Positions 47,201 through 51,900 of a stretch of 64,000 nucleotides of DNA are shown here, piece after piece. The stretch lies in assembly GCA_002269645.1 (NCBI GenBank), contig NIVC01000037.1, positions 1,335,121 through 1,399,120 of the forward strand. The letters run 5' to 3'. Positions within the stretch are counted from its first letter, which is position 1. The number at the start of each line of letters is the position of its first letter. This DNA is from Macrostomum lignano. Lineage: Eukaryota. Made by a program: the position numbers and the translations under genes. The notes below the pieces were generated by a model that was not told where the DNA came from, did not search any database, and saw nothing but the letters and a program-made list of their open reading frames with translations.

Positions 47201-47984
47201 CTCCCTGCATCTATCCCAGCATCCTCCCTGTACGCATCTCTCAATCTTCCTTCATCTTCAGACGCTTCATCCGGCAGAAAATGTATGGAGTAAATGCTAC
47301 ACTTAGAAATACTGTTATGCATATATTATTACAAATTGCTAACATTATAGCGTCCGCTTTTCTACCGAAGTACATAACGAACTTTGCAATGGGCTTATGC
47401 AGGACTATTGAATATAGAATCTATTTGCATATTAGTCTAGAATGCTAACCTCTAAGCTGCTGCAGCTCTTAAATATCTACCTCCTTCCTTCATTGCGGTA
47501 ATTAACTAACAGGGTGAGAGCGATTTTTCCTCCGGAGGTAATGAAGGAAAAGCAATCTTTGGACGAAACAGGTGATAGAAGTGCATGCATCTCAGCCACT
47601 CGATCCCAGCTGTAGCATCGATCTTATCCCAGCCAATCAATTCTGTTGGTCAGCAGCAGCCTCTCAATGCGATGGGATCTTGCCTCACCCTTTCCATATC
47701 TCTACCGCCAGCTGATCCAGCCGACTCAGAACTCTGGCGCCACTCTGGCCAACGCCTTCTACTGGCTGGACAAGACAGTGCCAGATTATATCAGCGGCGA
47801 AGTTCGCGAGGAGCCAGGCGAATCCGAACTCGGACAGGACAATTCGGCCTTTCGCATGATTGACAGCCGCGCTGACAACTACGGCGAGGGTGCAGCTGAG
47901 ACAGCCTCGGCGACAATCGTTGGCGAAGTTGTCGACAGTTCGGCGAGGGCGAACGAAAAGGCTGAGGTGATTTTCCGTAATTGA
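35270..47984 (+). CDS. SLC6 / neurotransmitter:sodium symporter family transporter 1, 12 exons, ~683 aa
   Basis: Exons 35270-35534, 36374-36505, 36580-36723, 37839-37962, 38592-38724, 38817-38951, 39746-39849, 41648-41772, 42170-42420, 42811-43008, 45644-45811, 47712-47984. All GT-AG with consistent phases (2052 nt). Motifs RGVWSSKFDF, GVGMANFLRFP..KNGGG, FFIPY, IYY, EEYF, W.DA..Q.FYS.G..FG..LSSYN, GL.FIAYP, YTYP.W. Confidence 0.93.
35543..35730. repeat. 22-bp minisatellite of two 8-bp palindromes (GGGATCCC, CCCTAGGG)
   Basis: Starts ~8 nt after the exon-1 donor. Confidence 0.92.
35780..36312. repeat. 17-bp minisatellite (CACCTGGGATCACCTGT)
   Basis: Direct reading; two CACCTG per unit. Confidence 0.93.
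36724..37702. repeat. 23-24-bp minisatellite (GGGGTGAGGGTGGCCTCATCAACA) starting at the exon-3 donor
   Basis: The first unit overlaps the real donor G|GTGAGT. Confidence 0.93.
38045..38485. repeat. 15-bp degenerate minisatellite (GGATTTCCCCCGGTT) grading into GGGTTTCCCACT
   Basis: Direct reading. Confidence 0.88.
38958..39700. repeat. (TCTA)n microsatellite
   Basis: Begins just after donor 38952; source of the SIYL ORFs. Confidence 0.97.
39882..41127 (+). mobile_element. Full-length but defective mariner (Tc1/mariner) element, 1246 bp, in intron 7 of SLC6 gene 1
   Basis: TIRs TTCGGTTGAA(A/G)GGAAAGTTCTCGCC at both ends; TA TSD at 39880-81 and 41128-29. Confidence 0.95.
40047..41053 (+). pseudogene. 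Mariner transposase pseudogene
   Basis: WFTRFRNGNFELEDQPRSG, WVPHDL, GDKKW (D1), LHDNARPH (D2), YSPDLAPS followed by a small deletion; in-frame stop at 40296-98 and several frameshifts. Confidence 0.93.
41316..41600. repeat. 16-bp minisatellite (CACATTCCCCAAACTT), ~17 copies
   Basis: Direct reading. Confidence 0.95.
42490..42800 (+). mobile_element. tRNA-derived SINE
   Basis: tRNA-like head with B box GGTTCGATTCC (42533-42543), central CTTCAGTTCACCCAGCTGTAAAATGGGTGCC typical of CORE/V/Deu-like SINE cores (recalled), and an (ATT)n-like tail. Confidence 0.75.
43135..44155. repeat. AT-rich 15-bp satellite with a 76-bp higher-order unit in the centre
   Basis: CAAATTGATT recurs at 43261, 43337, ... 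(period 76); flanks are monomeric CGAATCTCATTTAGA. Confidence 0.9.
44880..45640. repeat. 25-bp (and 20-bp variant) minisatellite (TCTGATCTGGCTCAGACCCTCACTA) ending at the exon-11 acceptor
   Basis: The last unit is the real acceptor variant TGGCGCAG|. Confidence 0.93.
46378..47225. repeat. 23-bp minisatellite (CCTCCCTGCATCTACCTCAGTAT)
   Basis: Direct reading; source of ORFs 46134..47448. Confidence 0.95.
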
Positions 47985-48475
47985 GCTGTCATGGATATGA
48001 AAGTGTCCGAGTGCTTTTTGGGGAATGAGACGGCTTCCCATTGTCGTTTTGGGGAATGAGACGGCTTCCCAGTGTCGTTTTGGGGAATGAGAAGGGACCC
48101 CGAGTGTTTATCGGTGATAAGATCTAAACGCGTTTTGTAGAATAACATTTTATTTTTAAAGAGCTGTTTGTTACAAAGGCTGAGAAGAAATTAGGGAGCA
48201 TGCTTACGAAGCAAGTACCGCCTTGGGCATGGGAAAATCTCATCAATACAGCGCATGCAGCACTGCCCATTGCTGCCTCAAAGCAGTTTATCCGAAATCA
48301 ATGAAAACTCAATAGGGGCCTATTCAAAGCAGAAAAAGCAGTTCGATAGAAATTCATATAAATTTCTGCTATACCTGTAGAAGCACTGCTTTTTCTCATT
48401 CAAGATTTTTTCACAAACCTTCGATATTTTGATTACAAGATAGGGCAGGAGACGTTAAAGCAGCAAATTTGAGTA

Positions 48476-48840
48476 ATGAGTATGAGTGTGAAAATGAGTA
48501 TGACTCATCACACAATGAGAATAACTCATCAACCCATGGGTATTACTCATCACCTCATGAGTATGACTCATCAACCCATGAGTATGACTCATCAACTCAT
48601 AAGTATGACTCATCAACTCATAAGTATGAATCATCAACCCATGAGTTTGACTCATCAACCCATGAGTATGACTCATCAACCCATGAGTATGACTCATCAA
48701 CCCATGAGTATGACTCATCAACCCATGAGTATGACTCATCAACCCATGAGTATGACTCATCAACCCATGAGTATGACTCATCAACCCATGAGTATGACTC
48801 ATCACCTCATGAGTATGACTCATCAACCCATGATTATGAC
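48476..48840. repeat. 21-bp minisatellite (ATGAGTATGACTCATCAACCC) between the two SLC6 units
   Basis: Direct reading; each unit carries ATGACTCAT. Confidence 0.93.
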
Positions 48841-48954
48841 TTGTACTTTATACATGTAAGCGTAATTCATCACCACATTCGAATGTGACTCATCTCCAAT
48901 AATTGTGCCTCATCATCCCAAAAGTGTCACCCAACCAAACCGCTCCCTTGTCAG

Positions 48955-51900
48955 ACGCGATCCCACGAGAGCGACGAAGACGCCGATCACTACTGGCACG
49001 CCTGGAGGGGAAAGTACGATTTCTTCGTCTCCTGCATGGCCTTTACAATCGGCATGGGCAACGTGTGGCGATTCCCCGTTCTCTGCTTCAAGTACGGCGG
49101 AGGTGAGAGCGATTTCCTGAGGATTATGGGTGTGTTTGTAGAGTAGCATGAGTTTGATTTGCTTACAGGTGACATTTGATATTTATGCCATTTCCTGTAG
49201 GTGGAGCGGGATCTAGGCCATTTCCGGTAGGTAGGAGCTAAGCCACTTCCGGTAGGTAGGAGCTAAGCCACTTCCGGTAGGTAGGAGCTAAACCACTTCC
49301 GGTAGGTAGGAGCTAAGCCACTTCCGGTAGGTAGGATCTAAGTCACTTCCGGTAGGTGGAATCTAAGCCACTTCCGGTAGGTGGAATCTAAGCCACTTCC
49401 GGTAGGTGGAATCTAAGCCACTTCCGGTAGGTGGAATCTAAGCCACTTCCGGTAGATGGAATCCAAGCCACTTCCGGTAGATGGAATCTAAGCCACTTCC
49501 GGTAGGTGGAATCTAAGCCACTTCCGGTAGATGGAATCCAAGCCACTTCCGGTAGATGGAATCTAAGCCACTTCCGGTAGGTGGGATCTAAGCCACTTCC
49601 GGTAGGTGGGATCTAAGCCACTTCCGGTAGGTGGGATCTAAGCTACTTTCGATAGGAGGGTCAATGATACGTGTATCAGCGTACTTCACTTCCGGATAAG
49701 CAAGCCTACATCCACTACACTAACTTTTGGTGGGATCTCGGTGGGATCAAAGTCACCTCCTTGTCGGTGGGATCTATAGTACTCGCTCGAATTCCCACTC
49801 ATTCCAGGCGCATTCTTCGCCCCCTACCTCATCATGATGATCATCTGCGGCATACCGATCTACTTTCTGGAGCTCATACTAGGCCAATACTTTCGCGAAG
49901 GCTTCTACAGAGTGTGGAAAATTGTGCCCATTAGCCGGGGCATCGGCATTGCGTCCTTCATTATTCTGCTCTACCTGGCCGTGTACTACAGCGCCATGGG
50001 CGCGCTGTGCCTGTACTATTTCTTTGCCTCTTTGGCGCCCAACCTGCCCTGGGCCAACTGCGAACACAGCTTCAACAGCGCCAGTGAGTGCGGGAGAGGG
50101 AGAGACTACAGGACGAGACAAGACACGGAGCAGACGAGAGATCAGATAGATCAGAGAGATCAGAGAGATCAGGGAGATCAGGGAGATCAGAGAGATCAGA
50201 GAGATCAGAGAGATAGAGAGAGAGAGAGAGATCAGAGAGATCATAGAGATCAGAGAGATCAGAGAGATAGATAGAGAGAGAGAGAGAGAGAGAGAGAGAG
50301 AGAGAGAGAGAGAGAGAGATCTGAGAGATCAGGGAGATCAGAGAGATCAGAGAGATAGAGAGAGGTAGAGAGAGAGAGAAGAGAGGTCACGGCGTGTTTA
50401 AAAAAATCAAAAGACTTAATTAATTTAATATGGGCTACCGGTTTCGAGCCTCTGGGCTCTTCGTCAGGCCAAAAAATCTGTGTGTCATGCAATTCAAGTT
50501 GGTCTTTTAAGTATTATTTTTCTTAGTCTGATAGAATTGATGAGTAGTTGTACATATGAGGGATGTACTTTTTAAAACCCTGTTTTGCCTAGCTCTAACT
50601 TGTCCCAGAGGCTTTCCACCATTCATTTTAAACGACAGTATATTTGTTATAAAAAATTGTTATTTCGAAGTACTATACGATATGCGATACTATACGATTA
50701 GATGAAATGCCGGTATTGGGGGTAGGAGCATAAAAATCAATATTGAGCGTACAATTAAGCAGTTTGAATAAAATAAAATAAATGACACGTGAATAAGTAT
50801 TGTACTTTAATAGGGTAAAAATAGCGCACTGGTTAAAATGATTAAATGTTTCCTGGCTGAGACTTGAACTTATTGGGAGCCAGGAGGCTCTGTAAGTTAC
50901 GTTGCCGTGTAAAAGCGGGCAGTATGCGGGAGCCTGGTTTATTTTGTAGCTTATCAAAGTTTTTAGCAATCTCGTTGGCAAGCCAGACCGTAGATGGGTG
51001 AAAAGGAAAGACCATTGGGATGGGTCGGAGAAGATGATTGTCGACCTTGATGTTCGTACCTGGCGGTTTGTCAGTCCCCAGTCCCCAGAGAGAGAGAGAG
51101 AGAGAGAGAGAGAGAGAGAGAGAGAGAGAGAGAGAGAGAGAGAGAGAGAGAGAGAGAGAGAGAGAGAGAGAGAGAGAGAGAGAGAGAGAGAGAGAGAGAG
51201 AGAGAGAGAGAGAGAGAGAGAGAGAGAGAGAGATCAGAGAGATCAGGGAGATCAGAGAGATCCGAGAGATCTAGGAGCGAGCGGAGAGCTCAAAGAAGGC
51301 AGGGGAGGCAGGCGGAACTGGGAAGCAGCTGGCACGTGAGATGAAACGGTCAGCTGAAATGCCACTCGAGACTGCATGGCAGCAGCTGTTTCAAAATTCT
51401 GAACTCGAATCTGAGAGACGTCTCAGAGTGTTGGCCGGTCACGAATCGCCTGACGAAAGCAATCTGGCGGATTGAGCAGCTGGGATCTAAATCCCGGAAA
51501 GTGTTCACCAACCTAACAAGGACAGATAGCAAATGTTCGGCCTCCCGTTGCCAGAGACACGTTGATTTATTCCCTAATAATTTCTCCTTCTATTTTAGAC
51601 TGCAGCTTCAGCGTCTACAATGAAAGCTGGTCAGAAAATGGCACCGATTTGAATGGCACTTCCGCTGTATTGAGCGTCACCAACTTCACGGCTGTTAATT
51701 TTATCGTGGCCAGTAGGGAATATTTCAGGTGTGACGTCAATTAGTTCTATTGCTGCTGATTATTGATCCTGATTGCCGTGATGCTGATGGAGCAGAACTG
51801 CTCAGGTGCGACACTGGTTGATAAATATCCCCTGATGCTGATGGAGCAGAACTGCTCAGGTGCGACACTGGTTGATAAATATCCCCTGATGCTGATGGAG

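Follow-up and report, generated by a model that had tools for sequence, protein, structure and literature searches.

A candidate spliced-leader AUG start for the second of two head-to-tail SLC6 genes in Macrostomum lignano

Our analysis of a 64,000-nt stretch of the genome of the flatworm Macrostomum lignano (assembly GCA_002269645.1, contig NIVC01000037.1, forward-strand positions 1,335,121 to 1,399,120; hereafter the window, position 1 being its first letter) found two intact, divergent SLC6/NSS transporter genes lying head-to-tail on the + strand with 970 bp between them. The upstream gene (gene 1) has its own ATG and stop; in the downstream one (gene 2) no in-frame ATG keeps the first transmembrane segment (TM1) whole. 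Judging from the sequence, we give about even credence to the view that gene 2 is a separate SLC6 gene started by the AUG in which the spliced leader (SL) of this species ends. Initiation at an SL AUG is a known flatworm mechanism, here in a species where it would be expected, and we consider it the most likely of the explanations weighed below; the joining of the SL at position 48955, the use of its AUG and a common precursor for both genes are what we infer from it. A first-pass annotation, made from the letters of the window alone, had proposed this start beside two others, and had guessed that the DNA came from a flatworm. The guess was right, as the protein of gene 1 is 99% identical to M. 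lignano UniProt entry A0A1I8IRP1.

Two SLC6 genes and a missing start codon

Gene models were built from stop-to-stop segments, tblastx of the two halves and frame-preserving GT..AG junctions. Splice sites were scored with position weight matrices derived from the 20 introns of gene 1 and gene 2, real sites being scored leave-one-out; on this scale real acceptors lie between 2.2 and 11.2 bits and real donors between -1.4 and 12.8 bits (median ~7.7). For coding composition the scale is given by the real exons (G+C at third codon positions, GC3, 0.71-0.80; codon log-odds +0.16 to +0.93) and by the introns (mean log-odds -0.63). The two genes and their landmarks are listed below, with a slash in a sequence marking the exon boundary.

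35193..35215, + strand: acceptor TTATTACTTTTTACTACTGCAG/ACG (cut 35214/5), candidate SL trans-splice site of gene 1, 11.7 bits
35270..47984, + strand: gene 1, SLC6/NSS unit 1, 12 coding exons, 683 aa, own ATG and stop
Gene 1 exons 1-6, + strand: 35270-35534, 36374-36505, 36580-36723, 37839-37962, 38592-38724, 38817-38951
Gene 1 exons 7-12, + strand: 39746-39849, 41648-41772, 42170-42420, 42811-43008, 45644-45811, 47712-47984
47982..47984, + strand: stop codon TGA of gene 1
48886..48888, + strand: in-frame TGA closing the frame of gene 2 exon 1 upstream
48933..48954, + strand: acceptor ...AACCAAACCGCTCCCTTGTCAG/ before gene 2 exon 1, 7.1 bits
48955..64000, + strand: gene 2, SLC6/NSS unit 2, at least 10 coding exons and at least 716 aa, open at the window end
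48955..49102, + strand: gene 2 exon 1, short N-terminus and TM1, GC3 0.80, log-odds +0.66
49036..49038, + strand: first in-frame ATG of gene 2, within TM1
Gene 2 exons 1-5, + strand: 48955-49102, 49808-50083, 51599-51728, 53002-53137, 55346-55584
Gene 2 exons 6-10, + strand: 57355-57482, 60664-60947, 62876-63076, 63304-63468, 63557->64000

Both genes match the Pfam SNF profile (PF00209, gathering cut-off 27) over nearly its whole length, gene 1 with 489.5 bits (profile positions 1-522 of 524) and gene 2 with 353.5 bits (3-521 of 524). Gene 1 carries the TM1 motif GMANFLRFP and the TM6 motif GPCFGGIMTLSSYN; the TM1 motif of gene 2 is GMGNVWRFP, and its TM6 motif is also present. Since the two are only ~35-50% identical in conserved blocks, they are old paralogues and not the product of a recent duplication. 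In sequence alignment gene 2 is colinear with the human DAT, GlyT and SERT structures, the alignment to DAT, which is one of sequence only, covering query residues 15-580 and being weakest near TM8-TM9. All 10 exons of gene 2 are open, with good splice sites, a GC3 of 0.75 and log-odds of +0.36 to +0.89. Exon 1 aligns to human DAT from residue 61, and by composition the coding signal begins at 48955. In the parts that they cover, three further M. lignano entries in UniProt agree with gene 2 at 87-91%. A protein search with exons 1-2 gave only four weak matches, and the protein collections searched yielded no transcript-derived protein spanning exon 1.

The start of this reading frame is what sets gene 2 apart. 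Upstream, the TGA at 48886-48888 closes the frame of exon 1; an ATG at 48883 stands directly before it. From 48889 to 49035 the frame contains no ATG, and the first two that follow, at 49036 and 49054, both lie within TM1. On these points the sequence agrees with the first-pass annotation, which had reported the closing TGA, the absence of an ATG before TM1 and the first methionine at 49036. Exon 1 follows an acceptor that reads ...CTCCCTTGTCAG/ACG (also written ...CCCTTGTCAG/ACG); the first base of the exon is 48955 and the phase is 0. This acceptor had been described as strong and of phase 0. The phase is correct; the strength is not exceptional, as 7.1 bits is the median of the real acceptors and 5.5% of all AG sites reach the same score.

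Several other details of gene 2 can be read from the alignments. It has WHAW at 48994-49005, where SLC6 proteins usually have an N-terminal gating arginine (RETW in DAT, RGVW in gene 1), and in TM8 both gene 1 and gene 2 have FSS where DAT has IDS. Public gene models begin exon 5 at 55298 instead of 55346, adding 16 residues; the acceptor at 55346 scores 8.9 bits (it is in the training set) against 4.5 for 55298, and its alignment to DAT is free of gaps. The public models also add a 284-nt exon at 61593-61876 (+), coding for ~95 hydrophobic residues between TM9 and TM10. This optional exon has an acceptor of 8.3 bits and a donor of only 1.6, its GC3 of 0.81 belongs to a generally GC-rich stretch, and it is dispensable for colinear alignment to DAT.

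A start codon from the spliced leader

The only SL of Macrostomum lignano, CGGTCTCTTACTGCGAAGACTCAATTTATTGCATG, is 35 nt long and ends in ATG (...TTGCATG), and trans-splicing affects ~30% of its genes and 45% of those conserved with human (PMC8629364). About 15% of the genes are in operons, defined as same-strand neighbours less than 1 kb apart after subtraction of repeats, the downstream gene being trans-spliced; the spacers of these operons are inflated by repeats (PMC8629364). Polycistronic precursors make up ~7% of assembled transcripts (PMC5730564). That the SL can also provide the initiator is documented for Schistosoma mansoni, in which more than 40 cDNAs need the AUG of the SL (Cheng et al. 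2006, as summarised in PMC9851317; also PMC12582326).

Applied to gene 2, this mechanism would place the SL on the acceptor at 48954/48955 to make the 5' end of the mRNA. The mature transcript would read ...UUGCAUG/ACG CGA UCC..., with the junction string ...ATTTATTGCATG/ACGCGATCCCAC, and the SL's own AUG would serve as initiator. As the SL ends in ATG and the exon beginning at 48955 is in phase 0, this AUG is in frame with the conserved open reading frame (ORF), and no stop intervenes; the first-pass annotation had deduced the same fit for a flatworm SL, and the published SL of this species bears it out. The predicted product would have 17 residues before TM1. Such a terminus is short yet not out of range, with the TM1 motif as near or nearer to the N-terminus in 15% of the M-starting homologues collected. 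The 970-bp spacer would be an outron, and would probably separate the two genes within a shared polycistronic precursor, in which gene 1 would end at a non-canonical poly(A) site in 47985-48400.

The region 5' of gene 1 offers a second candidate trans-splice site. The acceptor cut at 35214/5, 55 nt upstream of the gene 1 ATG, outscores all 20 cis acceptors, these being scored leave-one-out, and its sequence (CTGCAG/ACG) fits the published trans-acceptor motif [T/C]TNCAG (PMC8629364). Were the SL joined there, its AUG would begin an upstream ORF of only 14 codons, ending at the TGA at 35254-35256 and out of frame with the main ORF. As a candidate, an 11.7-bit acceptor in this position is what a trans-spliced locus would show, and by its sequence it lends support to SL initiation in gene 2.

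The spacer itself has the following features.

47985..48954, + strand: spacer of 970 bp; an outron or intercistronic region if gene 2 is trans-spliced, an intron (from 47967) if the two genes are joined in cis
48016..48092, no strand: 31-nt tandem repeat, 2.5 copies, containing the ATGs at 48056 and 48087
48141..48190, + strand: best-looking candidate, by inference, for the 3'-end region of gene 1, with AATAAC, a T-rich stretch and then TGTTTGTT
48494..48841, no strand: 21-nt minisatellite (ATGAGTATGACTCATCAACCC), 16.6 copies

Without its two tandem arrays the spacer measures 545 bp. The first-pass figure of ~970 bp between the genes is exact for the raw distance, and the repeat-adjusted value lies within the operon distance of less than 1 kb. 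No coding-like composition was seen anywhere in the spacer, and no other copy of it, dispersed or otherwise, within the window. Read in the SLC6 frame, the 21-nt array has intron-like values (GC3 0.37, log-odds -0.72 per codon), and array periods that are multiples of 3 are common in the window. The first-pass annotation had noted that AATAAA and ATTAAA are missing between the genes and that short repeats follow a possible donor at the end of gene 1, and had taken both as signs of an intron. The observations stand; what was drawn from them does not. Neither hexamer occurs in 47985-48954, where composition predicts 1.55 canonical poly(A) hexamers and the window-wide density is 1.0 per kb, so that finding none has p ~0.2-0.4 by chance. 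Single-base variants do occur (AATAAC at 48141, AATACA at 48245, AATGAA at 48300 and TATAAA at 48357), and in the planarian S. mediterranea AAUAAA is found at only ~41% of poly(A) sites, with single-base variants at another 40% (PMC5068929). Minisatellites are equally dense in the non-genic 1-35 kb and in the introns of the window. Because the lack of hexamers is at chance level and the repeats are as dense outside genes, neither favours an intron over an intergenic spacer.

Gene 1 and gene 2 are thus adjacent, on the same strand and 545 bp apart after correction for repeats, as the published distance rule for operons of this species requires. Initiation at the SL AUG is consequently consistent with the documented biology of M. 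lignano, and would fit without an extra coincidental splice site, unlike its rivals. To this extent the first-pass interpretation holds, with the joining of the SL to gene 2 being its predicted part. The weights that we attach to the different explanations follow from the frequencies of trans-splicing and operons, from the modest Bayes factor of the donor at 47966 and from the chance-level occurrence of candidate micro-exons, the last two of which are discussed below.

Some observations weigh against an SL start. The end of the gene 2 acceptor, TGTCAG, differs from the [T/C]TNCAG motif; this motif is found at only 44% of trans sites (PMC8629364), and it does not discriminate, since 7 of the 20 local cis acceptors also fit it. 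The 545-bp spacing is well above the operon mode of ~100 bp, most trans-spliced genes do not depend on the SL AUG, and the SL AUG has T at -3, a weak Kozak context. Lastly, an in-frame donor in gene 1 could use the acceptor at 48955 in cis. As cis- and trans-splicing compete for the same acceptors in S. mansoni (PMC5832876), however, trans-splicing and fusion in cis may not be mutually exclusive at this site.

The closest parallel is provided by the SL-AUG mRNAs of S. mansoni, in which, as proposed here, the SL ends in AUG, the acceptor lies inside a conserved ORF, the SL AUG is in frame and no other AUG yields the full conserved protein. The differences are that M. lignano is a free-living macrostomid, that its locus is known here from DNA sequence alone and that gene 2 lies directly behind a paralogue. 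With the operons of M. lignano described by Ustyantsev & Berezikov (2021; PMC8629364) the pair shares strand, a repeat-inflated spacer and a good acceptor before each gene; it differs in having a spacer above the ~100 bp mode, and operon partners are not usually paralogues.

Alternative starts for the second gene

The foremost rival is a splice in cis between the two genes. Its elements, and those of a third explanation discussed further below, are two candidate donors.

47964..47972, + strand: candidate donor GAG/GTGATT (exon end 47966), phase 0, 5 codons before the gene 1 stop, 6.8 bits
48853..48861, + strand: candidate donor CAT/GTAAGC (exon end 48855), phase 0 in the SLC6 frame, 7.3 bits

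Splicing from 47966/7 to 48955 would drop the last 5 codons and the stop of gene 1 and give one polypeptide of ~1,400 aa or more with two complete NSS folds and 24 TM (junction string ...GAAAAGGCTGAG/ACGCGATCCCAC), either as the main form or as a read-through isoform beside a stand-alone gene 1. We regard such a fused transporter as unlikely, and it is to its presence as an appreciable isoform that this low estimate refers. The donor that the first-pass annotation had reported just before the stop is indeed there, and as both it and the acceptor are of phase 0, the splice is in frame and bypasses the stop. Both termini of SLC6 proteins are cytoplasmic, so that the topology would permit a fusion. 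The donor also has AG at -2/-1, as do three of the four real local donors that lack G at +5, and the chance of finding a phase-0 GT this strong in a 273-nt exon is ~0.13, as estimated from two unused sites in the ~3.9 kb of remaining coding sequence; put differently, about one exon in every 7-8 with a length of 273 nt would be expected to contain a phase-0 GT that scores 6.8 bits or more (a figure resting on those two phase-0 cases). The lack of a canonical poly(A) hexamer in the spacer would suit a fusion but, like the repeats after the donor, is uninformative for the reasons given above.

Against these points, the donor at 47966 scores below the median of real donors, has no G at +5 and departs from GT[G/A]AG, the consensus of the species, present at 65% of M. 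lignano cis donors (PMC8629364). Nor is it stronger than background: in 35-64 kb its score is reached by about 7% (7.5%) of all GT sites, and eight others within the 4.2 kb of coding sequence have 6.0 bits or more. Three of these eight, in the coding exons of the two genes and evidently unused, outscore it at 8.5-9.6 bits. With a score within the background of unused sites, the donor is plausible and unremarkable. In addition, operons in M. lignano are far commoner than gene fusions.

The first-pass annotation had presented the double transporter as an architecture unlike any characterised SLC6. We, too, know of no characterised SLC6 that is a natural tandem; the junction, for its part, is already present in public predictions, as ...SSARANEKAE/TRSHES..., in the UniProt/WormBase ParaSite entries A0A1I8I498 (1588 aa), A0A1I8HSA3 and A0A1I8F9H1, which encode this locus or near-identical copies and sit within the 90% cluster of A0A1I8IRP1. 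These entries are automated, fragmentary predictions, over-merged or broken: A0A1I8I498 absorbs an unrelated Pro/Arg-rich ORF ~9 kb upstream and skips the ATG of gene 1, and other UniProt models of the locus read on into introns, omit exon 11 or end partway through the gene. The window's own public model for the rest of gene 2 begins at an internal methionine in exon 7. To judge by these visible defects, the M. lignano UniProt models are probably MAKER/ab initio predictions of the Wasik et al. 2015 annotation. A gene finder facing an exon with no ATG takes any in-frame donor, and the UniProt entries therefore do not count as evidence for the junction. A0A1I8IRP1, the model of another copy of gene 1, ends ...ANEKA, one residue before the candidate donor, with neither the EVIFRN ending nor the fusion. 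This end may be a real stop, which would block a fusion in that copy, or an assembly error.

Two-unit SLC6 models recur in mollusc annotations, and an exhaustive search ranked several such predictions at the top of its list. Three are RefSeq entries from a scallop and two snails (XP_060064335.1 from Ylistrum balloti, XP_041349165.1 from Gigantopelta aegis and XP_059161224.1 from Physella acuta) and a fourth, from the mussel Mytilus galloprovincialis, is in GenBank. Each is predicted as a single polypeptide with two complete SNF units, and a conserved linker between the units (WGPGP..NQEP..DLPDYVICTPD..GLAL.TANLY.PN) is common to three of the four. The locus of the scallop Y. balloti (GCA_031769215.1; exons 58303-58488 and 75896-76111) has the geometry of the fusion considered here, with a donor 8 codons before the stop of the upstream unit joined, over a 17.4-kb intron, to the acceptor of the exon with TM1 of the downstream unit. 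The scallop differs in that its second unit has an in-frame ATG of its own. In the molluscs, moreover, the first unit is the divergent one, with LKFP and not NVWRFP in TM1, and both units are nearer to gene 1 than to gene 2, so that by sequence these pairs, which are uncharacterised predictions, are not obviously orthologous to that of M. lignano. They may hint at real fusions or else reflect an artefact of gene prediction that recurs where SLC6 genes lie in tandem. Engineered head-to-tail SLC6 concatemers, such as SERT-GAT1, reportedly have two units that fold and work in one chain, as a fusion here would require, yet these are artificial constructs.

Slightly less likely than the fusion is a start of the conventional kind: a short 5' exon within the spacer would contain the ATG and be cis-spliced to 48955, and it would have its own promoter or itself be trans-spliced. 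Animal genes often begin their coding sequence with a short, non-conserved exon, and most eukaryotic SLC6 proteins have longer N-termini than the SL AUG would give, the median position of the TM1 motif being 65 residues in. We enumerated all combinations of ATG, donor and acceptor by which the spacer could be read in frame into the exon at 48955. This exhaustive search returned six one-intron paths and a single in-frame path with two introns, which the first-pass annotation had missed and which occur at chance frequency. The best candidates are the path from ATG 48087 to donor 48113 (MRRDPECLS/TRSHES...), whose donor TCG/GTGATAAGA scores 6.0 bits, the highest found, and the one from ATG 48476 to donor 48487, behind the acceptor at 48449. 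Equal-length decoy windows give paths of at least 6.0 bits in 28% (intronic) and 22% (upstream) of cases; the micro-exon paths, being found at decoy frequency, therefore carry no weight. The candidate exons, which lie within tandem repeats, score negatively for coding (-0.52 and -0.23, and -0.72 for the repeat exon), and no acceptor above 2 bits is present between 47985 and 48381. As ATG 48087 is only ~100 nt past the gene 1 stop, its promoter or transcription start site would overlap the 3' end of gene 1. The two-intron path (48056-48113, 48449-48855, then 48955) was rejected for its intron-like codon usage (GC3 0.37) in an ordinary minisatellite.

The least probable of the explanations, by a sequence-based judgement, is a non-coding leader exon, such as one with its end at 48855, joined to 48955, with translation starting at methionine 49036 or at a non-AUG codon (junction string ...TTTATACAT/ACGCGATCCCAC). 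The outcome would be a protein truncated in TM1 or non-functional, and a gene 2 in the course of losing its function, which appears equally improbable. The donor at 48855/6, reported by the first-pass annotation as the end of a non-coding exon, is present and fits GT[G/A]AG. By frame alone the exon is not closed, as the SLC6 frame before 48855 is open back to 48433; it is the lack of an ATG in that frame and the composition that make it non-coding. Gene 2 is the more divergent unit (353 vs 489 bits in Pfam) and is without the conserved N-terminal gate arginine, as decay might produce. However, with an exon 48449-48855 the ORF would be preceded by 31 ATGs, which share one frame other than that of SLC6 and come mostly from the 21-nt array, and a start at 49036 would delete half of TM1. 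Moreover, gene 2 looks functional, with open exons, good splice sites, strong codon bias and full-length SLC6 alignment.

Other features of the window and significance of the locus

An Rfam scan of the whole window gave no matches and no SL RNA gene, and no SL-like sequence within 5 mismatches was found in it. Intron 7 of gene 1 contains, at 39981-41050 (+), a frameshifted remnant of a Mos1/mariner-type transposase, with the Pfam domains HTH_48 and Transposase_1 spread over three frames. A reverse-transcriptase fragment at 11420-11779 (-; Pfam RVT_1, 47.9 bits) is presumably a LINE remnant. The window has ~47% G+C, is eukaryotic and is dense in minisatellites. A Pro/Arg-rich ORF with a GC of 64% lies at 24516-26019 (+), its sole Pfam match being a sub-threshold one to Glypican; it is the ORF joined to gene 1 in A0A1I8I498.

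Whichever explanation is correct, the current public protein models of this locus contain several errors. If the two genes were fused, the product would be the first natural tandem SLC6 transporter, with a bearing on oligomer function; a splice from 47966 to 48955 that is both real and abundant, which we think doubtful, would together with the mollusc models make the tandem SLC6 a natural and so far unrecognised architecture in Lophotrochozoa. If, as we favour, gene 2 is started by the SL AUG, it would be a clean example of a conserved M. lignano membrane-protein gene that is untranslatable without the AUG of the spliced leader. Such a case would be of use for annotation: a gene finder blind to SL-AUG starts will fuse or truncate genes of this kind, as the UniProt entries of the locus illustrate. 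The pair would then form an operon made of two paralogues, and the finding from Schistosoma would be extended to a free-living flatworm capable of transgenesis.

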